64,000 nucleotides of DNA. Source: Takakia lepidozioides. Lineage: Eukaryota > Plantae > Bryophyta. The notes beneath the pieces were generated by a model. That model made no database searches. It was not told the origin of the DNA and worked only from the letters and a program-made list of their open reading frames with translations. The translations under genes and the position numbers were made by a program. How positions within the stretch are numbered: position 1 is the stretch's first letter; each line of letters opens with the position of its first letter. Positions 22,343 through 64,000 of the stretch are shown one piece after another. The stretch lies in contig CM060731.1 of NCBI GenBank assembly GCA_030704615.1, positions 47,244,001 through 47,308,000 of the forward strand, read 5' to 3'.

Positions 22343-25300
22343 TCAGGCCAGATGAGGCATCTGATTACACACACCAATGCCAACATCTACCTCATGGCTT
22401 ATTTCCTCATCTTTGCTTGGCTCAGGCACATGGCTCATCTCTGCAGTGTCCGGAAAGATTTCCCTGCTGAGCAGAACTGCTGCTGGGGTGGTGATGACAT
22501 CACCTGAGCCATTGACCTCCACAATATCATCTGTCCCCAGAGCCACTGCATCGTTGGGACCTGCCAAAGTCCCTTTATCATATTCTGGCATGATGGCATT
22601 GACACCTGGATCAATAGCATTGCTAGAGACGCGGTCCTCTGGGCTGATGCCAACATTCTCTGGAAGAAGGTCATCATCACTGAGGTAATTGGCACGTGGA
22701 AATGCAGCCTCTCCTTCAATCATTGTGATGTCTTCCCGTCCTTCTTTGCCAGAGCCCTCATCACTGATGTTGTTACTATTGCTGGGCTTCCCACCAATTG
22801 CTTGTGGAAGTACAGTTATGTCCTCCGCAGCTTTGTGTCCAGCAACCCCTGGGCTGTTGTCATTGATATCCAGAGTGATGTCGTTGCCATAGACCTCTTC
22901 TTTTTCTTGAGATAGCACTACTATGTCATCCCTCTCTTGCTCCTCATAATTATCTGATTTGAGGGCATGAGCTGGTAGAAGGACACTGCTGATGGTTTCC
23001 TCCTTATAAGGCTCTGAAATGACATCATCACTGGGCGGTTCTTCATTTTCTTGAGAACATACAACCATGTCATCTCTAGCACTACCTGCATTGATCACGT
23101 CACTCGCACTGCTGATGGTTTCCATCGTATAAAGCCCTGAAATGAGTTCATCACTGGGCGGCTCTTCATTTTCTTGAGAACATACATGCATGTCATCTCT
23201 AGCACTACCTGCATTGATCACGTCACTCGCACTGCTGATGGTTTCCATCGTATAAGGCTCTGAAATGAGTTCATCACTGGGCGGCTCTTCATTTTCTTGA
23301 GAACATACAACCATGTCATCTCTAGCACTACCTGCATTGATCATGTCACTCACTGCAAGGAAATTGATGTTGTCAATATCCCAATTGATGGCATTGCTAG
23401 GCACCATGTTGTCTCCATCCTGCTCCTCATTAGTATCTGGACTCAGCATCACATTCTGTGGAAGCACGCTATGGATAGTTTCCTCCTTACAAGTCTCTGC
23501 AATGAGCGCATCGCTAGGCACCTCTTGGCTTTCTTTAGGAAAAACCACCATGTAATCACTAGCTTGCTTGCCAGAACTATCTGGACTCATCAAGTCACTC
23601 AATGGGAGGCAGCCATCTGTAAATTCCTCCTCAAAAAGCTCTGGAAAAATTAGATCACACTTTGGAAGGATGTCACTACCAGGGGTAACACATTCTTCAG
23701 AAAGTACTTTGATGTCACTGGTGGCTTCCTCGCCAAAGTAGGGAGGGACGCACCCCATAACTTCCTTCATGGTATTGTCTGGTGTACTGATTGCAGCACC
23801 TTGCAGAAGGTCACCATTGATATGCTCTTCCACACTATCCTGAGAACGTATGTTGCTGGCTTCCTGACATCCTCTGGTGTCATTGCTAAATTCCACTCTA
23901 GTGTCCTTTGGACTGATAACATCACCCTGTGGACTGATGTCATCCTCCCAAAAATAACCAGGTACCTCAAGACTCCCTTGAGGAAGCACTGAGCTGTCAG
24001 CTGCATCATGGCCAGGGTCCCTTGGGCTGCTCTCATCTACTATATCAGCTGCATCGCTTGGTAGCGGTGTGACCACTTTGGCAACCAGAGCTACGCCATC
24101 ACTGCAATTCTGGCCAGGCTCCTCTGGAGTAACTATGTCAACATCAGGAGATATGAAATCCTTCTCTTCATCTGGATTTGCACCTTCAATCACAGGTAAG
24201 ATTTCCCCATTGGAATTCTTGAAAATATCAGAGGGGATGATGATTACATCACCAACCTCCTCAAATAGGCAGTCACCTCCGGACAGAACTGCATATCTAG
24301 GCTTTGTCCCTTCCTGAACATTGCACATCACACCAACATGAAGCTCCTGCTTTGACGTCCCATCTGCGAGCAAAGAGCTTGTCTCCTCAACTCCATCAGC
24401 TCCTTTTCTTTCTGTAAAGCTGGGTATTTCCTGATCCCAGACGGTTCTACTACTAGCGTAACCAGACTGAGGACCAGTGTCAGCTTGCTCAAGCTCACAA
24501 ATGGCTTCAGTAACTACCCTCACATCTTTAACATTGTCATCACTAGACTCCTGAACCAATGCTTTCCTGCGCGGATTTGTGCTAGACACCACATCAACAG
24601 TCTTGGTGACAGAGTCGCTGACCATGGTGCCAACACAACCTCTTTTCTTCAACATACCAACCCTTTGTAAAATGTTTGCAAGTTCGGCTTCCATTTCTTG
24701 CTGCTGAGCTATGGATTCTGGCATAGCCACTTCCTCTAACACCACTGCCTGGTCTCCAACCTCCACAGCTACTGGTTTGTCGCAGCTTTCATCTACACCA
24801 CAATACGATTCTCAGAGCTGACAAAAAGGAATGTATGCACAAACTTCCACGTTCAGTTACTAATACTAAACACTGAACTTGGTGCCATCCCATCCCATAT
24901 GGAGAGTCCACTCAGAATTGAAAACCCGCTTTCTAAAATCGAGCGATCGCATCAACTTGCAGTGAGCATTGCATCTACGACAAAGCCATTCAGTCATTTT
25001 TAAACTCCAACCTGCTAGATACACAAAATTATCAAACCCAACTTTTACTCTGTAGGTGTTCAACGGCTGACTTACAAATATGCACATTTACTTTGCTGCA
25101 GGCTTCACTTTTACTGCTCTCGTCAACGGTGAGCACACTAATGTCTCTTCCCGGATGCAACCTCTCGTTTGGACTTAACTTCTCCCTAGGCAAATCTGTG
25201 CCACCTCGTCTTCTCAAGTTCCTGATTCGAGCTTCTGAACCCATCTGGTTTTCGCAATGGACAGCCATGGCCTTCACTTGTCCACCGAGTTTCCGGAGCC

Positions 25301-26075
25301 TCTCCCTCAACCCATCTATCTCTTGCATAAGCTTGCTCTTCTCGCTTTTCCATCCCTGCTCTCTTGAAGCATAAATTGCCACAAGCTTTGCATTGGCCTT
25401 TCCATCTTCTGCACGGACCTGCTGCAATTCTGCCACACGGCTTTCTGACTCCGCTACCCTTTTGAAGAAATAGCCCCTCTGAGCATCAGCCTCCACCACA
25501 GTTTTCTTGAGTTCTTCTCTCTCCACTGCCCACGCTGCCTCGGCCGCTGCCTGAGCCGCGACTTTCTCAGCCACCCTTGCTTCGGCGCTTGTTGCACGTT
25601 TCGAAAGCTCAATCCTTTCTCTCTGGAAAGCTGCCTCTAAGGCCCCCTTCTCTCTCACTCTTTCTTCAAGTGTCTGTGTCTTGAATGCTAGACCCCGCAA
25701 ACGCTCCATAGCTTCTTTCAGCATCACTTCCAGTGCCATTCGCCTGAGCTTCGGAGGCCCCCGATACCCATTCTCCTCGGACTCCCCGGATAATTCCTTC
25801 TTTTTCACTACGTTTGTTTCTCTGATCAAAGCACCTAATGCAGCAAACGCTAATGCCACTGCAAAATACTCAGATAAGAGGGGCCAAGATTCTCCTTCAT
25901 TCAAAGTGAAATACTTCGTCATTAGTTTCTGTCTACCCGGGCTAAGGTTCTGTAGTCTTCCTACAAGGTCCGGCCTACCTGAATCTACAGAAAGTCCTAC
26001 CCCAACCATTGTCGAAGAGCTCTTTGATTTTGTGTGATTACTTTCCTCACCATCGGTACAGTCATCTTCCCCCAT
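22343..26075 (-). pseudogene. Coiled-coil protein gene (At5g53020/At3g45900-like N-terminus) fused to an ~800-aa acidic exon; possibly disabled
   Basis: Exon 26075-25092 contains RAEDGKANAKLVAIYASREQGWKSEK. The best acceptor (24817) is followed by an in-frame TGA (24814-24812). The large ORF ends at 22343 but acidic coding-like sequence continues in shifted frames; small spliced exons near 21620-21670 and 21330-21395. Confidence 0.6.
22984..23352 (-). repeat. Three tandem 123-bp (41-aa) coding repeats
   Basis: cttcattttcttgagaacatac recurs at 23041, 23164 and 23287; unit SDVINAGSARDDMVVCSQENEEPPSDELISEPYTMETISSA. Confidence 0.95.
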
Positions 26076-27288
26076 GAGAACAAGTAGTAAAGTTAATACC
26101 ACGCAACAGCGAAATATCTCAACCCAACTCTACGATTAGTCCAAGCACCATGACCCCAGACTACGAAACTACTGAAAAGAGAGTCCTTTGGTAGCATAGG
26201 AGGAAGAGGCGGCAGAATGAGAGACAGACCACCATCAGTAGTACTCCAGTTTCCAACCTCTAGAGGTCTGTAGCTTCTACGATCAAAAGCGAAAGAAAAT
26301 TTTCATATAGATTCTTCTTGCTGCTATCGCCAGGAAAACAATGGTGCCAAAAGCACTAGCGCGCCTAATTCAAAACCCAAAAATGCCCTCTTTCCTTCTC
26401 AGAGACCATGCAGCACTCATTCAGACATCTGCGACACGCCCAACCCGAGCTGGCGAGACACGTTCAGAATACCAGATAATATCTGTGTTAAGAAGCAGAT
26501 CGCAAGATACTCAGGTGAAGTCAGACAAAGCCAGCTCCAATTAGAAAAACCCGAGCTACCATACCAATGCCCTGCCATACGTAAGGACAACCCAGCCCCA
26601 GAAAAGACGTCTGTTTTGTATCAAAGACATAGAAATCTTTGACCATGACGCAACGATCGATGGGGGCAGAGATAGACTCGGTGCTGTAGAGACAGGCACA
26701 GATTGAGTTGTTTCCGTGAACGCTGCCGATTCTCTCGTGCGCCACGTTTGTCACCATCTGCAGCCTGCCTTGTGTCCATCTCTCTCTCACACACTCGCAA
26801 AGAAGACCAAGGTAACTCCTGCGATGAGAAGACGACGGCTTCCCGCGTGGACACTGAGGACGTGGCGCAGCGGGCAGGCGGAGGCCGGGCAGCCACGGAA
26901 TCCCCTCACTATCTGGGACAGAGTGCCGAGGATCGAGCCGTGCCGTCTTCCGTCGGCCGGCCAGTTGCCGTTCATTTCCTGTGCCCGTTAATCATCCATC
27001 TGCGAGCCACTCCGTTAATTAACGTCGTCTGTACCTAACGGGCGGAGAGAACTCCCGCACGACAACCGCGGGGCACCACACGCTGCTGCAGCGCGGTGAC
27101 CGCAAGATTCTGTGTGGTCGCGATGTGGGCCACGAGTGCCGATCTCTTATCTAGACTGGATTGGCTTGGGTGACGGTTGGAGCCCACTTTCGTCCACCTC
27201 GGCGTTTATCATCCACGTACCCGTCAATCTATTTCTGTTCCCGACCGTAAATTTACAAAGGAACAGACAAACGAGTTTTTCATTGTCC

Positions 27289-34798: not shown

Positions 34799-36130
34799 TT
34801 AATCGACAATCATGTCTACCAGTGTAGATCCTTCATATTCCTCTTTCCAGGCGCCCGTCGGATCAGGAAAACGAACTTGCAGCAGAAGCTGCTTATAATT
34901 TTGCCACTCCTGGAGGCTCTGGGATGCACTACACATATTATGCCCTGCACCTGATCCCTCTGCAATAGCCTCAGAACCTTCAGATTCCGCTTCCGGATCA
35001 GCACAAGGATCCTGCACAAGTTGCTGAAAACCTTGCCCCTGGAGGCTCTGGGATGCATTACAAGTATCATGCCCTGCAACTGATCCCTCTCTAATAGCCT
35101 CAGATCCTTCATATTCCTCTTTCCAGGCGCCCGTCGGATCAGGAAAACGAACTTGCAGCAGAAGCTGCTTATAATTTTGCCACTCCTGGAGGCTCTGGGA
35201 TGCATTACATGTATTATGCCCTGCACCTGATCCCTCTGCAATAGCCTCAGATCCTTCAGATTCCGCTTCCGGATCAGCACAAGGATCCTGTAGAAGTTGC
35301 TCTAAACCTTGCCACTCCTGTAGGCTCCGGGATGCACCTGATCTTGCACCGTATTCCGTAATAGCCTCAGATCCTAATTCAGATTCCTCTTCCAAGGAGG
35401 TCCCTGCCTGATCAGCACAAGGATTCTGCATAAGAGGCTCATAATATTGCCTCTCCTCTAGCTGGGATGCGCTATACATATGCCCTGTACCTGATCCCTC
35501 TGTAATAGCCTCAATACGTACGTTGTATGTCTCAGCACCATGGAGGGTCGATGAGCTCTGCTCTGTTCCTGATCCCTGTACCTCATAACGTGGCTCCACT
35601 CCCTGGTGTGTCAGAGCCGAAACCTGGCTCGTCTCAGCAGCCATATGGACATTGAGGTATGACCCGTGCGCCGGAACACCATAGCTCCGCAAACAGCCCA
35701 TGTGGTGGAGAACCTTTTGATGAGATTCGCGCAATTGCGCTCCTAACCTCTCCAACTCCACAAGATTCAATCGTTGGAGGCAAATTTCATCTCCCCACAA
35801 CATTCCTGAAAGTTCTTTCGAGGCACTCAATTCTGCCTGCAATTTCCAAACTTGGTCACGCAACGTGCTCAAGTTCCCCGCATCAGTGCAGTGACTCTTC
35901 TCTTGGCGTTCATGGGATGCGTCAAACCGTTCGATAACATCCCCAATAGACCGATTACAGAACTGCACGAGTTTTCCAGAAGGAGAGAATGCAATTACCG
36001 CCACATCCACATCACAAAGAATCGCCAACTCTTTCGCTTTCTTGAGCAATCCATCCCTACGCTTTGAAAACGTCACCTTTGCCTTGGCTTCGTCCTCCAA
36101 TCTCTTGATCTCAATTTTAGCACGGCCCAT
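34799..36130 (-). CDS. Intronless MADS-box transcription factor with K-like coiled-coil and repetitive acidic C-terminus, 443 aa
   Basis: MGRAKIEIKRLE..VTFSKRRDGLLKKAKELAILCDVDVAVIAFSPSGKL; K-like LWGDEICLQRLNLVELERLGAQLRES; uninterrupted ATG-to-TAA ORF. Confidence 0.92.
   Translation of the reverse strand: MGRAKIEIKRLEDEAKAKVTFSKRRDGLLKKAKELAILCDVDVAVIAFSPSGKLVQFCNRSIGDVIERFDASHERQEKSHCTDAGNLSTLRDQVWKLQAELSASKELSGMLWGDEICLQRLNLVELERLGAQLRESHQKVLHHMGCLRSYGVPAHGSYLNVHMAAETSQVSALTHQGVEPRYEVQGSGTEQSSSTLHGAETYNVRIEAITEGSGTGHMYSASQLEERQYYEPLMQNPCADQAGTSLEEESELGSEAITEYGARSGASRSLQEWQGLEQLLQDPCADPEAESEGSEAIAEGSGAGHNTCNASQSLQEWQNYKQLLLQVRFPDPTGAWKEEYEGSEAIREGSVAGHDTCNASQSLQGQGFQQLVQDPCADPEAESEGSEAIAEGSGAGHNMCSASQSLQEWQNYKQLLLQVRFPDPTGAWKEEYEGSTLVDMIVD
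34826..35510 (-). repeat. Tandem coding repeats in the MADS C-terminus (276-bp duplication built of ~45-aa subunits)
   Basis: 34826-35033 is near-identical to 35102-35309; EAIxEGSGxGH..ASQ-like motif occurs five times. Confidence 0.93.
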
Positions 36131-39270: not shown

Positions 39271-39489
39271 GGTCAAGGCGCCTCAACATCTCTGCTGATC
39301 CTGCTTATGGTCGCAAGGAAAGGAGGTCTTCTATGACTTTGCTGCTGCTGTTCAATTATCATACTGGAATGGTGAATATAACCATGGGCAGCTCACAAAA
39401 GAGAAGTACCCACTGTCATAACCAATCACAAATTGGTTCTGCCTTTTCGTCTTTGTGTTTCAAGTGATGCTTCCTGTATATTGCTTGTT

Positions 39490-41714
39490 TCACCAGTATT
39501 CCCCACAAGAACAAACCCATCTTGAAAGTGGTGAAAGCTGTTGGCATCCCGCACAACAATTTCTCGACCAGAAATCTTTGAGATGAACTGGTGGCGGTGT
39601 GGCAGTCACCACATACACAAAGGTTCTTGATAATGTGGATAGGCATCGCTGTTTGCGTGCTGATCAGACCAAAAGCAATGGCCAGCCTTTCACTGTGATG
39701 GCAGAGAGAAAATTCTTTTCGCTCCTCCAAATCACGCAATACAAACTGTGTGTCAGGCACGTACCCGGCATCCTTCATCCTCCCAGACAATCGTTTTAGC
39801 TCAGCATGGATTTCCTCAATCCATGGATGCACATTATCGTCTACAACAAACGTATGCACCTGGTTGTCCACCTCAATGCAGCAGCGCCCAGGCTCCTTTC
39901 TAATACCTCTATCATGCATCATTTTCCTAATCTTTGCTGCATCGTCCCACCTTCCAGCAGCAGCATAGATGTTTGAGAGCAGCACATAACTTGCAGCATG
40001 TGGATCCGTTTTGAAAAGCAACGTTGCCACATGTTCGGCTACCTCCACATTGCTATGAACTCTGCAGGCACCCAGCAAGGCCCCCAACACTGCAACATCT
40101 GGTTCAATCGGCATTCTGTTGATGAAGTTCTCTGCCTCATCCAATCGGCCCGCACGGGCAAGAAGGTCCACCATGCAGCCAAAATGTTCTGCTGCAGGTG
40201 TGAGGCAATGATCTTGACTCATGGAACCAAAGAAGTGGGGCAGCCTTCATCCACTAGGCCCGCATGGCTACATACAGAAAGAACACACACAAAGGTAATG
40301 CCATTGGGTTTCGAGCCCTCCTGTTGCATTTGTCCAAATAGTCGGAGGGCCTCACGTCCACACCCATGCTGAGCATAGCCTGCAATCATTGCATTCCATG
40401 AGGCCACATTGTGATGAGCTATATAGTCGAACACTCTACGGGCGTCCTTCATGCTCCCTGATTTGGCACACATATCCCACGAGGGTAGTCTTCAAGTTGA
40501 TATCTGTAGTGATTCCAGCTTGGAGGATGTCAGACCTCTATGCCCTTTTCCAGGGCTGCCAGGCCAGCACATGCATTGAGAACGCAAATGAATGTGATTT
40601 TGTCAGGCGTCACTCCTTCCCGTACCATTTGCTTGTACGTGTTGAAAGCCTCCATACCACACCCTTGCTGAGCATATCCTGTGATCATCGCATTCCATGA
40701 GACCACATTTCGTTGAGCCATATTATCAAACACTTGACGAGCATACTTCATGTTCCTGCATCTTGCATACATGGCAGCAGGAGCAGTCTCCAGAATGATA
40801 TCAGGTGTTCCAGCTTTGCTAATGTCAGCATGGACCTTTTTGCCCTTCTCCAGTGCTGCCAGGCTGGCGCATGCATTGAGAATGCATACAAATGTGACCT
40901 TTGTGGGGATCACCCCATTCCTTATCATTTGCTCATAGATATTGAAAGCCTCACGACCTCACTCATGCTGAGCATATGCTGCTATCAATGCATTCCAGGA
41001 GAACACATCTCGATAAGCCATTTTGTCGAATACCTGACGCACATCCTTCATGTTGCCACACTTGGCATACATGTCGACGAGGGCAGTCTCCAGAAACATA
41101 TTTGGCACAATTCCAGCTTTGATGATATCAGCATGGACCTCTTTGCCCTTTTCCAGAGCTGCTAGGCTGGCACACGCATTGAGAACACAAACAAATGTGA
41201 CATTGTTGGGTGTCACCCCTCTTGTATTCACTTTCTCATAAATCTCCAAAGCATCGATGTCAGCATGGACCTCTTTGCCCTTATCCAGGGCTGCAAGGCT
41301 GGCACACGCCTTGAGAATGCAAATGAACGTAGCGTTGTCGGGCCTCACTCCTTCATGTATCATTTGCTCGTAAATCTTGAAAGCCTCCATACCACACCCA
41401 TGCTTCACATATCCTGTCATCATTACAGTCCACGTAAACATATTTCGTTCAGGCATTTTGTCCATCACTAGGCGTGCATCCACCATGCTCCTGCATTTGG
41501 CATACATGTTGACAATAGTGTTAAGTAGAAACATGTTTGGCTTTAATCCACTTTGGATAATGTGGTTGTGCACCTGCTTTCCCATTTCAAGGTCTTCAAA
41601 GTTGCTGCACTCCCGCAAAAGGTAAATGTAAGTACTGGAATCCACTGAAATGCCTCCTTGGTTCAGAATGTGCAGTGCATCTTTCAGTTGTCCGGCCATA
41701 CATAGTGACCTCAA
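39490..41714 (-). pseudogene. PLS-class PPR protein with E/DYW deaminase domain (organellar RNA-editing factor), disrupted
   Basis: Repeated P/L/S motifs, E domain, PG box (RKEPGRC), HSERLA and CGDCH Zn motifs, ending CSCGEYW*. In-frame stop at 40959, frameshifts near 40530, 40220 and two in DYW, and an apparent internal motif deletion near 41250. Confidence 0.9.
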
Positions 41715-55795: not shown

Positions 55796-57208
55796 ATGTC
55801 ACGACTTGCTACCTCGAAACAGATCAAAGAAGAAAGTTTACAATGGTCAAGCGAGGATTTGGAACACGCCATGAATGCTACAGAGGAAGGTATGGAGCTT
55901 AAGAAGGCTGCTCGTTTGTGGGGTATCCCTCCCTCGTCCCTTCGAGATCACCTCACAGGAAAAACCAAAAGTCGCAAAGTGGGAGCTGCATCAGTTCTAT
56001 CAAAAGATGAAGAAGATGAAATTGTGAAGTGGGTGTTGGAGATGCAAGAACTGGGGCATGGACTAACCGTTCATCAATTGAAGCTCAAGGTTGCAGAGAT
56101 AACTCAAGAGCTCGTCACCCCATTCACCAACGGCATACCTCGAGCAAGTTGGTGGAGATGGTTCAAAACAACGACATCCACAAATTTCCCTACGAGTTGC
56201 ACAAGGGCTGGAAGTTAGTCGAGCCAAAGCCCTCAATGAAGAAAATTGTCAGAGCTTCTACTCTAACCTCCAAAAAATGTACAATGAGCATCATTACCAT
56301 CCATCACATATCTGGAATTGTGATGAAAGTGCCGGACACACAAGTGGTGTCAGAATTATGGCAAAACGAGGTACACATTACGTCTATGGCCTTATTCCCA
56401 AAGCAAGAGAGTGGATGTCTGTCTTAGCTTGCATCAATGCTGCAGGTTATTCCATGCCAAGGTTCTACATCTTTAAGGGAAAGCAAACGATGAGAAATTA
56501 TATCCAAAAGTGTGAATCAGGCGCCACCATGGGTATGCAAGAGAAAGCTTGGATGAACAAGGCTTTATTCAAAGCTTGGTGTCTCATTTTGTTCAAAATG
56601 CCCCTGGAGGTGTTTCACCCAGCACTAGAGATTTGCTAATTCTTGATGGCCATGGATCCCATGTAACAAAAGAGATTGTCTTGCAAGCTAGGGAGCGAGG
56701 AATTGACCTTCTCACTCTACCTGCCCACATGAGCCATGCATTACAACCACTAGATGTGACATGCTTTAAGCCTTTCAAAACAGCTTTCAAAATGGAACGA
56801 GATAGGTGGACATTGTCTCATCTTCATATCAACCCCGAAAAAGAAGACCTTGCCGAATGGGTGACCTTGTCTTTGAGGGCAGCATTGACACCTACAAACA
56901 TCAGATCCGGGTTTTCTTCCATTGGAATATGGCCCCTTAATCCCAATAAGGTCATGAGGATAACAGCACCATCTCGAGCAAGGAAAGCCAACCTAGCTAA
57001 TGGAAAGAAAGCACGACAAGCTGAGCAAGTTGTAAGGGAGCAAGAGATGACTACAAGAAAAGCCTTGAATCAGCGTTGGTCGGCACATAGTGTTACGGCT
57101 ATTGGTGAGAAGCTCCATTCAGATTTCAGGGCTAACATACAACCAGACCCTCATGGTTATAAAGCACCCTACTGTGCGGCAATCCTTGTGGTGTGCAAGA
57201 ACAACTAA
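55796..57208 (+). mobile_element. pogo/Fot1-type (Tc1-mariner superfamily) transposase pseudogene: HTH-psq, CENP-B HTH, DDE_1
   Basis: KKAARLWGIPPSSLRDHLTG, WWRWFK, IWNCDES, LILDGHGSH, LPAHMSHALQPLDV split over three frames; TIRs not identified. Confidence 0.88.
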
Positions 57209-59191: not shown

Positions 59192-59460
59192 TTATGTAAT
59201 CTTTGTGATAAAGAGAAAAGACTGCAACAGTTGGTCACGGAAGATAATAGGAATAATGTAAGAACTTAATGCAAGCGCGTCGGGACGGTCCAGCCCTGAC
59301 ATCCGTACCGCCGGTTCTTCGCCTCTGGCAGACATCGAAAGGCAGCCGGCTGGGCTCGGTCAATCCCTCCCCACCCCCGCCCTCATCCCATCGGCGTCGT
59401 CGCCCCCTGCGTCGTCGTTCTGCGACACCAGTCCGCCGCTTCCAGCAGTCCGCCAGTTCC

Positions 59461-61005
59461 CTGTAACCCCCGCCCCGGGTTCAACCATCACCCCCATGTA
59501 ACCCTCTGTAATTCCGCCGAGTGTAACCCACATTACCATGTAACCCTCTGTAACCCATATAACCCCATGACCCTCTGTAACCCTCACCACCATGTAACCC
59601 TCTGTAACCCATGTAACCCTCTATAACACCGCAGAGTGTCACCCCCACCCCTATGTAACCCTCACTACATGTAACCCTCTATAACCCATGTAACCCTCTA
59701 TAACACCGCAGAGTGTCACCCCCACCCCTATGTAACCCTCACTACATGTAACCCTCTGTAACACTTTGCAACCCATGTAACCCTATGTAACCCTCTGTAA
59801 CACCGCAGAGTGTCACCCTCACCCCTTATGTAACCCTCTGTAACCCATGTAACCCTCTGTGACCCTTTGTAACCCTCACCACCATGTAACCCTCTGTAAC
59901 ACCGCAGAGTGTCACCCTCACCTGTATGTAACCCTCATTACATGTAACCCTCTCTGACCCTCTGTAACCCTCACCACCATGTAACCCTCACTCCATGTAA
60001 CCCTCTGTGACCCTCTATATCCCTCACCAGGTGTAACCCTTACCTCCATGTAACCCTCTGTAACACCGCAGAGTGTCACCCTCGCCACTATGTAACCCTC
60101 ACTCCATGTAACCCTCACAAACCCTCTGTGGCTCTGTAACCTATGTAACCCTCTGTAACACCGTAGAGTGTCGTCCTCACCCCTTATGTAACCCTCTGTA
60201 ACCCATGTAACCCTCTGTGACCCTTTGTAACTCTCACCACCATGTAACCCTCTGTAACACCGCAGAGTGTCACCCTCACCCGTATGTAACCCTCACTCCA
60301 TGTAACCCTCTCTGACCCTCTGTAACCCTCACCACCATGTAACCCTCTGTAACCCATGTGACTCTCTATATCCCTCACCAGGTGTAACCCTTACCACCAT
60401 GTAACCCTCTGTAACACCGCAGAGTGTCACCCTCGCCACCATGTAACCCTCCGTAACCCTCACAAACCCTTTGTGACACCGCAGAGTGTCGCCCTCGCCC
60501 CTTATGTAACCCTCACTCCATGTAACCCTCTGTAACCCATGTAACCCTCTGTGACCCTTTGTAACCCTCTGTAACACCGCAGAGTGTCACCCTCACCCGT
60601 ATGTAACCCTCTTTCCATGTAACCCTCTCTGACCCTCTGTAACCCTCACCACCATGTAACCCTCTGTGACCCTCTATATCCCTCACCAGGTGTAACCCTT
60701 ACCTCCATGTAACCCTCTGTAACACCGCAGAGTGTCACCCTCGCCACCATGTAACCCTCACTCCATGTAACCCTCACAAACCCTCTGTGGCTCTGTAACC
60801 TATGTAACCCTCTATAACACCGCAGAGTGTCGTCCTCACCCCTTATGTAACCCTCTGTAACCCATGTAACCCTCTGTGACCCTTTGTAACCCTCACCACC
60901 ATGTAACCCTCTGTAACACCGCAGAGTGTCACCCTCACCCGTATGTAACCCTCACTCCATGTAACCCTCTCTGACCCTCTGTAACCCTCACCACCATGTA
61001 ACCCT
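59461..61005. repeat. Complex tandem array of TGTAACCC-core motif with higher-order periodicity
   Basis: Many dozens of (a/c)tgtaaccct units interleaved with gtaacaccgcagagtgtcaccctc; long near-identical blocks offset by 659 bp (60002 vs 60661; 60122 vs 60781). Confidence 0.97.
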
Positions 61006-61289
61006 CAGTAACACCGCCTCGTGTACATCATACACGTGTAAACTATCCGACGGCCGAATAGAGGTTTAAATAGAGGCCGAAACCCTAATTTGCTCTCTCC
61101 ATCCGTTTCCAGATTCCTAGCTCGCTCGTTTTTTTGCTTTGGGGCATCAGCTTTCTGCAATTCCCATGGTGCCCAATCGGCTTCACACATCAATGCGAAA
61201 GATTTGTAGTTCATTCAGTTCAGTATCGTCATCCCAGCAACATACAAGACAACGCTTTCCGCGCAACGATCCGTCAAATTTATTACTAC

Positions 61290-61570
61290 GTTTCTCTACG
61301 ATTGATACGGTTGTCTCTATTCTTTTTCTTTCTCAATGTCATTCTTGTTGTTTTGTCACCGTCCCCGATGGCTATGGTATTCCTAAGATCCGCATTAGGA
61401 AAGGGTTTTGTTTCTTTCGGTCTAGCCATGCAAGCAGCCGCTCATTTGACGGGGTGCCCATTCACTCTCCTCTCGTGTATCTTTTGTTCACACACCAGTC
61501 GGGGCAGCCTACTCATCGTTATTATGGATGCAATACGTATCGAATCATGCGTGTTTTGCAAGCACTGTCA
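61290..61570 (-). pseudogene. Decayed inverted paralog of the 62328 Zn-finger-like ORF
   Basis: Minus strand reads CEQKIHERRVNGHPVK*AAACMARPKETKPFPNADLRNTIAI versus CGAVKVDKSRLNRHIVDGTAACMARPKGTKPFPDAELKHAMAV in the plus ORF. Confidence 0.8.
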
Positions 61571-62327
61571 ACCGGTTACATGTCTGATGGTTTATATGAC
61601 TACCTCACGTGTGCTATGGTTACACACAGGGGGTTACACGGTGTTTTCTTTCTCAATACATGCTAGCTTGGTAGACGGTTTAGTAATGGAGGTTTAGATG
61701 GGGTTGACATGTTTGATGGGTTACGTGGATGTTGCGCTCGCGGAGCCACATAGGCTAGGGTTACATGGGTGGGGCATTACATTGACCATGTTTACCTAGA
61801 GGTTGCATACTAATGGTTTGATATGACAGGGTTACATCGATGTTGTGTTCGGGAGTCACATAGACTAGGGGTACATGAGGTTGTGACGAAGGGTTACATC
61901 ATATCTGGGTACCTGACGGAGGGTTACACTCGACGTGCCTGGCATTCGAGTAACGGCCGGTTTGTCGCGCTCACAAGTGTAGGGTTACGGGTTACACTCC
62001 GCTATTCCGGGTGACACCGGGATTGCAACTCATACACGTGTGAGTCAGTGCGGATATAATTGATTGCAAGCCGCAAGATTTTAATGAACCGCCGTCTTTC
62101 GCTTAACCGACGTGCCTTACGGGTGACATCTAGCTAGCTTCGTTCTTCGTTCTTTGATCATTGTTCAGTTTTCCCCTTCTCGCAGCCTTTCATATTCTTC
62201 CTGCACTCCTTGCTGTGCGTGCTCCCTGTTGTGCGTTCTTCGGAATTCTCTTGGTCTTGGTCTTTTCTTGTCTTGTCTTTTCTTGTTCTTGCTTTTCTCT
62301 TCTCTTCTGTCAGCTTTTTCTTTTGTC

Positions 62328-64000
62328 ATGGCTGATTGTTATTTGTTCCCTGGAGAGGCTACTATTCCATTTGATCACTTGAAAAGGGATGGCGAACGAG
62401 TTCGCTTCTGGTACACTGAGCATGAGCATGCTACAATGATCGCGTACTGCCACACCAGGTGTAGAGAGGCCAAGGTGGAGGGAGCAAAGGGCCGGCCTAA
62501 GTTCAAATGTCCTTATTGTGGGGCAGTAAAGGTAGATAAGAGCAGATTGAATCGGCATATTGTCGATGGAACGGCCGCATGTATGGCCAGACCGAAAGGA
62601 ACAAAACCGTTTCCTGATGCGGAGCTCAAGCATGCCATGGCTGTTGAAAATGTGATGAATTCTGTTCCAGCTTCTTCTGTTGATGCATATCATGCATGGA
62701 TTCTGCAAAATAGGGTGGCTTTGGGTGAGATTGCAGATCCTATTGAAGTGCCTGCTATTGTACCTACTTCGGCTATTTCTGTTACAGAGGTTCCATCTTC
62801 TAGTGCTCCTGCTGTTTCTGTCCCTGGTCCTTCTATTCGGCAGGTTTCTAACGAGAGAGACAAGCGGCGATTGAGCCCGCCTCTACCTGTCCCTATTGCA
62901 AAGAAAATCAACATTGGAAACCGGGGAAACCGGAGCTCAAGGTTCATCTTGCGAAAGAGAACTCCAGGCTCAATCCTTCTGCTACCGCATGGCCTTATTC
63001 CTCAGTTCCCATTTCCGAATGTCAATGAGAAGGGGTTTTGGCCGGCATTCCAAGAATTTGTTGCGCGAGGCGAGGGCGCAGTCCATGCGACAGCTGCAAA
63101 ATCAAGTTGGGTTCTATCGACAGACAATCAAGTTGGATTCCCTGCCATTTCTCTGTTTTTCAAATTTTGGGCTGTTGTCTATCCATGTAACCCCTTGTGT
63201 TACCCCCCCTGTCTCTCATGTGGCGTGTAACCCAGAGTGTAACCCACCTACAGAGGACCCCTTTTAAAAACCCCTATGGTGTGTAACCCACCTCTGTGTA
63301 ACCCCGTGTAGCCCATCTTGTTTGTAACCCATTTTCATGTGTAACCCCTCGTGCTGTAACCTTTTTCTCTGGTGTAACCCCTCACGCTGTATTGCGCAGG
63401 GAGCTCATATCATCTTAGAAGCGATGATATGGACAGTGTTGTTGCTGCCCACAAGGCGTTTACTGCCCAGCCGGATCATGGTCCGTTAATGATAGAGGAA
63501 TTGAATCGGGTGAAGGAGTATTTAGAGAGCATTGGGCATCCTGACATGCCAAAGTAGAAAAAGAAAAAAGGTGGGAGACTTACACGAGTCCATCGAGAGA
63601 GCCAAGCCTCACATGATGATGACACGATGGACGAACTAGCTGTTGGCAATACCGACCTTGACGATGCCAGAACTTCAAATCCTCTTGTCATCACTATTAC
63701 TGTAGATGGAATCAAAGGTTTGGTTGTTCCACATCCGTTGGAATTCACTCGTGGTTTTGCCGAAGGATTGATCAGTCAAATGGAGAATCTCACCAAACCG
63801 CACATTGGACCGCCACCACTCCTTTTGAGAATTCTAGCCCACAACGATGTAAGAAATCATGGCAGGTCAGTTTCCCAAACGCATCCCAGGTTGGGGTTCA
63901 CGACTGAACTTCTGGAAAGTGCTCTTACGGCCTCAAAGGTGAAGGACCTGGTCGATGAGTATTACGACTTTAGTCTGATGTACTTTGCACAACCTGGTGA
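62328..64000 (+). CDS. Unknown CxxC..H..C Zn-finger-like protein, probably TE-encoded; spliced, one in-frame stop, runs off window
   Basis: ATG 62328, FKCPYCG..RLNRH..C, S/P/V-rich linker with basic NLS-like runs. Intron ~63106/63131-63399; downstream exon open to 64000 except TAG at 63555. Confidence 0.55.

Follow-up and report, generated by a model that had tools for sequence, protein, structure and literature searches.

A zinc-finger gene amid clusters of its putative recognition word in Takakia lepidozioides: a candidate transposon self-recognition system in a bryophyte

Introduction

The closest described counterparts of the locus reported here are two self-activating transposon systems of plants. 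In the first of them, the Arabidopsis system formed by VANDAL21 (Hiun) and VANC21 (Hosaka et al. 2017, PMC5735166; Sasaki et al. 2023, PMC10398659), VANC21 binds the word YAGTATTAY, which is dense and co-oriented in VANDAL21 introns and upstream regions, and removes DNA methylation (PMC5735166). In the second, TnpA of Spm binds clustered CCVTCGCAAA at the element ends and activates the copies of its own family, as described for TnpA-Spm1 in Arabidopsis (bioRxiv 10.64898/2026.08.24.746577). Here we describe the last 4.7 kb (59266-64000) of a 64-kb stretch of the genome of the moss Takakia lepidozioides (contig CM060731.1, positions 47,244,001 to 47,308,000; hereafter the window), in which a gene for a zinc-finger protein lies among dense clusters of an eight-base word, TGTAACCC. 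We give a probability of roughly one half to the reading that this unit forms the left portion of a large DNA transposon whose finger protein would read the word for self-recognition. To our knowledge, transposon-encoded, sequence-specific self-activation is known experimentally in flowering plants only, from VANC (Arabidopsis) and from TnpA (maize and Arabidopsis).

Like VANDAL21, the unit has a short, dense and co-oriented word in the non-coding DNA of the element (introns and upstream regions) that is rare elsewhere, and in both cases the word is amplified by fast-changing tandem repeats and related elements carry different words. It is unlike VANDAL21 in its protein, which is unrelated to VANC21 and has a C2HC-type finger, in its bryophyte host, and in its array, which with 66 copies in 1.5 kb is much larger and makes up a long end. 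The likeness to En/Spm TnpA lies in an element-encoded accessory protein, proposed here as the reader of family-specific motif clusters near the end, and in a specificity that would come, as it does for TnpA, from dense clusters and not from single sites (bioRxiv 10.64898/2026.08.24.746577); unlike in Spm, the motifs also fill the intron and the promoter spacer and are not restricted to the termini. The kind of system is therefore already known, and the differences here lie in the protein, in the lineage of the host and in how large the array is. To this the locus adds three observations: a paralog-specific word, a better-kept core and a CpG pattern.

Results

An eight-base word confined to the end of the window

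The window contains 80 exact copies of the word TGTAACCC, a number that none of 100 shuffled controls reached (1.47 expected), and all 80 lie inside 59462-63380. They fall into three clusters, 66 copies on the plus strand at 59462-61004, 6 on the minus strand at 61631-61996 and 8 on the plus strand at 63186-63380, while the 7-mer GTAACCC has only 4 copies in the remaining 59.4 kb. Counts by segment gave no copy in the leader, the decayed gene fragment, the 5' untranslated region or the exon 2 region; exon 1 has none with the first of two intron models (Table 1) and one (63186-63193) with the second. Each segment carries the word in one orientation and, with the first intron model, the word sits in non-coding segments. 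The initial annotation of this stretch had the motif confined to the unit, which these counts bear out, and also pervading the whole of it, which holds for the non-coding parts but, under the first intron model, not for the coding ones.

The largest cluster is a complex higher-order repeat of 1.54 kb with 4.3 words per 100 bp, in which copies at offsets of 388 and 647 bp are 82-85% alike and motif spacings peak at 9-10, 16-17, 20 and 42 bp. Both this array, initially described as about 1.55 kb long, and the GC-rich leader on its left agree with the earlier description, and together they make up a candidate long end. The spacer with the inverted motif upstream of the gene likewise agrees with that description; it holds, beside the 6 exact 8-mers, 8 copies of the 7-mer (GGGTTAC as read on the plus strand), derived in part from a tandem duplication of about 110 bp. 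In the intron, 7-8 words depending on the model, all of them on the plus strand, stand in local repeats of 26-33 bp.

Every cluster thus consists of local repeats peculiar to it. The consensus reads C(A/T)TGTAACCCTC in the array and GTGTAACCC(A/C) in the intron copies, and BLASTN between array, spacer and intron gave no alignment, the 8-mer core being all that the three clusters have in common. Within the array this core is better kept than its surroundings: when motifs were marked in one diverged array copy and scored in the other, 29-39 of 36-51 motifs were intact against 9-15 expected, with an identity of 91-97% within the core vs 84-87% outside it.

The array had also been called telomere-like. 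We rejected a telomeric or subtelomeric repeat, since the plant-type units are missing from 59266-64000 (no CCCTAAA, TTTAGGG, tandem TAACCC or TAACCCTAACCC) and the resemblance comes down to the 6-mer TAACCC. Searching the literature for the 8-mer yielded primers and unrelated text only, an Rfam search gave no match, and neither did metagenome scans with a protein alignment and with an array 20-mer.

A CpG-rich leader and spacer

In a window with a G+C content of about 45% and a background observed/expected ratio of CpG (CpG o/e) of 0.45, the leader and the spacer are not CpG-depleted. The ratio is 1.09 in the leader and 0.99 in the block 61005-62327, above the highest value (0.95) among 290 windows of equal size elsewhere. 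This is what low germline methylation would give, and may reflect it.

A zinc-finger gene with a probable premature stop

The open reading frame (ORF) that begins at 62328 is, by comparison with its paralog, a real gene, because P0005, the first product of the paralogous locus L002 described below, matches its start, its finger, its C-terminal block and its intron position. Exon 1 encodes an N-terminal module of about 106 residues that includes the finger, then a Pro/Ser linker that is not conserved, and a C-terminal block (residues 213-264) that is. Of the two intron models, the second places a 1-nt indel that separates the window from a near-identical contig (L001, below) inside the intron, and makes exon 2 begin one residue from the alignment start of the paralog's second ORF. 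The plus-strand ORF with a motif-bearing intron that had been proposed initially is therefore real in outline, with its coordinates now refined to either model.

Exon 2 opens with a short coding stretch that ends in an in-frame TAG, after which the frame reopens to the end of the window (Table 1). The exons were searched as separate queries and not as one spliced protein. In these searches exon 2 matched P0006, the 411-codon ORF that follows the gap in L002, weakly (p ~0.04), with no stop in P0006 at the corresponding point, and the post-stop frame matched residues 237-266 of P0006, also weakly (p ~0.024), with the two matches in collinear order. We read the TAG at 63555 as a probable premature stop in the window copy, because the paralogous ORF is stop-free there and the frame reopens for 147 codons; the gene likely continues past 64000 through this post-stop frame.

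On the minus strand, between the array and the gene, tblastn detected a stretch with 40% amino acid identity to residues 42-106 of the gene product (E 1.7e-8); in the DNA, 61371-61484 aligns in inverted orientation with 62641-62528 (114 nt, 75%). It contains an internal stop and its finger cysteines are gone, and on this alignment it is a dead partial duplicate and not a second gene or ORF. A decayed minus-strand zinc-finger ORF had been described here, of which the decayed homology stands and the ORF does not, and the accompanying picture of head-to-head paralogs was overstated, the minus-strand partner being a remnant of 65 residues.

L001, a Logan contig equivalent to window positions 61919-63457, differs from the window at 14 mismatched positions and by a 1-nt insertion at 63407, which leaves 99% identity. 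Four of the differences lie in exon 1, all of them non-synonymous and all in the linker. L001 is a second copy or else the allele of a different accession. Given its TAG and the adjoining dead inverted fragment, the copy in the window is probably decaying or defective.

Table 1. Features of the unit and of the adjacent transposase remnant, in window positions
Feature	Position	Strand	Details
Decayed pogo/Tc5-type transposase	55796-57208	+	three frames; HTH_psq, HTH_Tnp_Tc5, DDE_1
Leader	59270-59461		69% G+C; CpG o/e 1.09
Candidate long end (leader, then array)	59270..61004	+	composition, motif count
Decayed inverted gene fragment	61367..61549	-	tblastn
Motif cluster in spacer	61631..61996	-	330-700 bp upstream of the gene's ATG
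Exon 1	62328..63186 (or to 63196)	+	285 codons from ATG 62328
Intron	63187..63399 (alternative 63197..63418)	+	GT-AG ends and frame kept in both
Exon 2 start	63400..63557	+	51 codons to in-frame TAG 63555-63557
Post-stop open frame	63558..64000	+	147 codons to window end

An orphan protein with a single C2HC finger

A HMMER search with the exon 1 protein against 1.84 billion protein representatives returned its own 99% copy (P0001, on L001), one true relative, P0005, and three unrelated multi-finger proteins whose match is confined to residues 53-81; among these representatives there were no orthologs and no relative beyond the finger other than P0005. Word searches with exon 1 found only the near-identical Logan copy, and those with the 147 residues behind the stop and with P0006 gave nothing or only the query itself. 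The ESM Atlas offered only unnamed or weak C2H2-like neighbours, and a PDB sequence search with P0006 found nothing meaningful. In Pfam, exon 1 reached only zf-Di19, with 17.6 bits and below the cut-off of 27.5, and the post-stop frame had no match. The initial annotation had recognised no family for this protein, and these searches agree: by its sequence it is an orphan whose single finger is a C2HC variant of the classical type.

This finger is a single Cx2Cx12H(x7)C motif formed by C61, C64, H77 and C85. It shares with classical C2H2 single-finger binders the Cx2Cx12H spacing and a conserved Leu at helix position +4, and differs from them in its fourth ligand, a Cys located 6-8 residues past the His in place of a His located 3-5 residues past it. 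In a profile search of the PDB, residues 56-78 weakly resemble the classical DNA-binding C2H2 fingers of ZFP57 and CTCF (E 0.005), and a low-confidence AlphaFold model predicts ββα at the finger, with a predicted local distance difference test (pLDDT) score of 52-58 in that region. A precedent for binding DNA with a single C2H2 finger plus flanking contacts is the GAGA factor.

A paralogous locus with a different word

The contig L002 was assembled from the same read set as L001 (SRR15431198), that is, from the same or a closely related plant. It has an ORF-gap-ORF layout like that of the window gene, with a matching intron position. From its own Met to residue 119, P0005 is 32% identical to the gene product, and a second aligned block covers residues 213-264; it keeps C61, C64 and H77, a further Cys close by, and both the FWY and the KP(F/W)P block; the fourth finger ligand is a Cys at +8 in the window gene and at +6 in the paralog.

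The L002 intron contains four copies of another word, CAGTCCGC, within 180 bp, vs 0.13 expected for the contig, and the whole contig has no TGTAACCC. The finger helix is identical in both paralogs at positions -1 (D), +1 (K), +4 (L), +5 (N), +6 (R) and +7 (H), and differs at +2/+3, which are S,R in the window gene and I,Q in P0005. In C2H2 fingers, helix positions +2/+3 usually contact bases. The comparison, made on two loci only, hints that protein and word change together across paralogs.

Two further observations concern the paralog's word. In L002, coding Gln/Pro repeats (IQQTP...) at 1714-1900 hold the reverse complement of the intron word, CAGC[AG]GACT, four times. In the window, the only two copies of CAGTCCGC stand 17 bp apart on the plus strand at the inner edge of the leader (59429-59453), a number that is not above chance, as 27 of 100 shuffles had at least two; their position is merely suggestive, and the pair may be left over from an older word or be due to chance.

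Setting and neighbouring genes

A Pfam scan of the 64-kb window identified a PPR-E-DYW gene and a MADS-box ORF, as in bryophyte-like eukaryotic DNA. The surroundings of the candidate element are rich in transposable elements, and a decayed pogo-type transposase adjoins it. This pogo/Tc5 remnant (Table 1), located 2 kb left of the leader, was considered as the element's own transposase and rejected, being decayed, motif-free and outside the motif domain; since it has no copy of TGTAACCC, we regard it as a separate element.

Further to the left, at 39416-40222 (-) and 40533-41391, are the PPR-E-E+-DYW deaminase C-terminus of the RNA-editing factor gene and, directly upstream of it and on the same strand, repeats of 132 and 300 bp that are probably PPR repeats. 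The MADS-box ORF, 443 codons at 34799-36130 (-), carries its MADS (SRF-TF) domain at the N-terminus (E 3.5e-22) and includes a coding tandem repeat of 147 bp (34901-35336). Two long ORFs, of 807 codons at 22343-24766 (-) and of 356 codons at 25032-26102 (-), have no Pfam match; the longer one contains a 123-bp repeat in three copies at 22984-23351, in a region with strong negative GC skew.

Discussion

We propose that the unit is laid out as follows. The CpG-rich leader and the one-orientation array would constitute the long end of the element, followed by the dead inverted fragment, by a promoter spacer in which the word is inverted, and by the gene with its word-bearing intron. The N-terminal module, a single classical-type ββα finger with conserved flanks, would read dense clusters of TGTAACCC; as such clusters are restricted to non-coding DNA of the element itself, the protein would mark every copy of the family, and this marking would activate the copies or shield them from silencing, in the manner of VANC21 with YAGTATTAY and of Spm TnpA with CCVTCGCAAA. 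The clusters themselves would grow through local tandem duplication. Considering where the word is placed, in the long end, the promoter spacer and the intron, the VANC pattern fits best.

The unit looks like a fragment of a selfish element and not like a conserved host gene, and the signs of mobility in the window are indirect: an orphan gene family, a defective copy with a dead duplicate, a second copy or allele at 99% identity and surroundings rich in transposable elements. In 59266-64000 there is no MURA-type transposase (MULE, DBD_Tnp_Mut, SWIM), the element running off the end of the window. Neither DUF1985 nor DUF287 was found by Pfam in exon 1, the post-stop frame, P0005 or P0006, at E<=0.01 or at E<=1. 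The ORFs of the unit, in a scan of its left 4.7 kb, have no Pfam match to Transposase_24 (TnpA) or Transposase_21 (TnpD), and no CACTA occurs around the composition step at 59266-59275, where the boundary itself is uncertain. The analogy with CACTA TnpA drawn in the initial annotation accordingly survives for the mode of action and not for membership of that superfamily, and its large DNA transposon or selfish unit holds as far as the look of a selfish fragment.

Several points weigh against our reading. No transposase, second end, pair of terminal inverted repeats or target-site duplication lies within the window, which also lacks an inverted copy of the leader or the array, and the outer boundary at about 59266-59270 follows from a composition step only. 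In the gene, the matches of exon 2 and of the post-stop frame to P0006 are weak (p 0.02-0.04 per piece), and the splice models give the paralogs unlike intron phases, 1 or 2 here vs 0. The AlphaFold check that had been suggested initially returned ββα at the finger in models that, with overall pLDDT values of 37.8 and 43.7, are both unusable. One finger normally reads 3-4 bp, and an 8-mer would need extra contacts. The conservation of the core is possibly inflated, as the aligner anchors on a repeated word and gene conversion homogenises; the high CpG o/e of spacer and leader can equally be explained by a young insertion; and the co-variation of protein and word draws on two loci. Finally, the binder of the word could equally be a transposase or a host factor.

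This last point leads to an explanation in which TGTAACCC serves transposition, either as subterminal sites that join the ends in the way of maize En/Spm TnpA or as sites read by the transposase itself, with the finger gene as cargo. The largest cluster, 66 of the 80 words, does lie at the presumed element end, AtMu1, a Mutator transposase, is itself reported to be a sequence-specific activator of its cognate copies, and TnpA binds motif clusters at the Spm termini (bioRxiv 10.64898/2026.08.24.746577). We nevertheless consider this explanation unlikely: joining of the ends needs no clusters in an intron or in a promoter spacer, which match the VANC pattern instead, and the paralog alters both the word and helix positions +2/+3, a sign that the reader is the finger protein. 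It is quite unlikely, in our estimate, that the locus is non-mobile, with a lineage-specific host zinc-finger gene of a small family placed beside a satellite and a word that is autoregulatory or has spread by chance in promoter and intron. Such a gene would agree with the lack of transposase and termini within the window, with the ordinary structure of both paralogs (5' untranslated region and introns) and with L002 being single in its assembly, but the copy in the window has a stop that is probably premature and a dead duplicate in inverted orientation, all four of its exon 1 differences from L001 are non-synonymous, and a 1.5-kb array of the same word abuts it. The initial annotation had itself named a conserved host gene as the contrary case, and the 1.84 billion representatives contain no ortholog.

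We judge it improbable that the word has no reader at all, having expanded as a satellite by slippage or unequal exchange and seeded the nearby DNA by gene conversion, with the gene irrelevant to it. All three clusters are indeed built from local tandem repeats, and satellites can homogenise a core. The clusters, however, have only the 8-mer in common, with different flanks and nothing that can be aligned, which is not as expected of conversion from the array; the core remains exact through changes of orientation from segment to segment, and the paralog repeats the phenomenon with another word. Self-recognition by a transposon-encoded finger protein, at the even odds stated above, remains the reading that we prefer.

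More tentatively, it is possible that bryophyte transposons evolved self-recognition independently of Spm TnpA and of VANC in the Brassicaceae. The reader would then be an orphan C2HC protein with a single finger, and its target a word of 8-10 bp amplified by the element across all of its non-coding DNA, and paralogs and words would diversify together, TGTAACCC with S,R and CAGTCCGC with I,Q. For annotation, arrays such as this one would be parts of transposons and not telomere-like or centromeric satellites. If the reading is true, it would provide a small and possibly re-targetable DNA-reading module, with natural pairs of protein and word for studying shifts in specificity. Found in a bryophyte and with an unrelated zinc-finger protein, the strategy would be convergent and old, and 'private address codes' would be a recurrent, ancient strategy of plant transposons.

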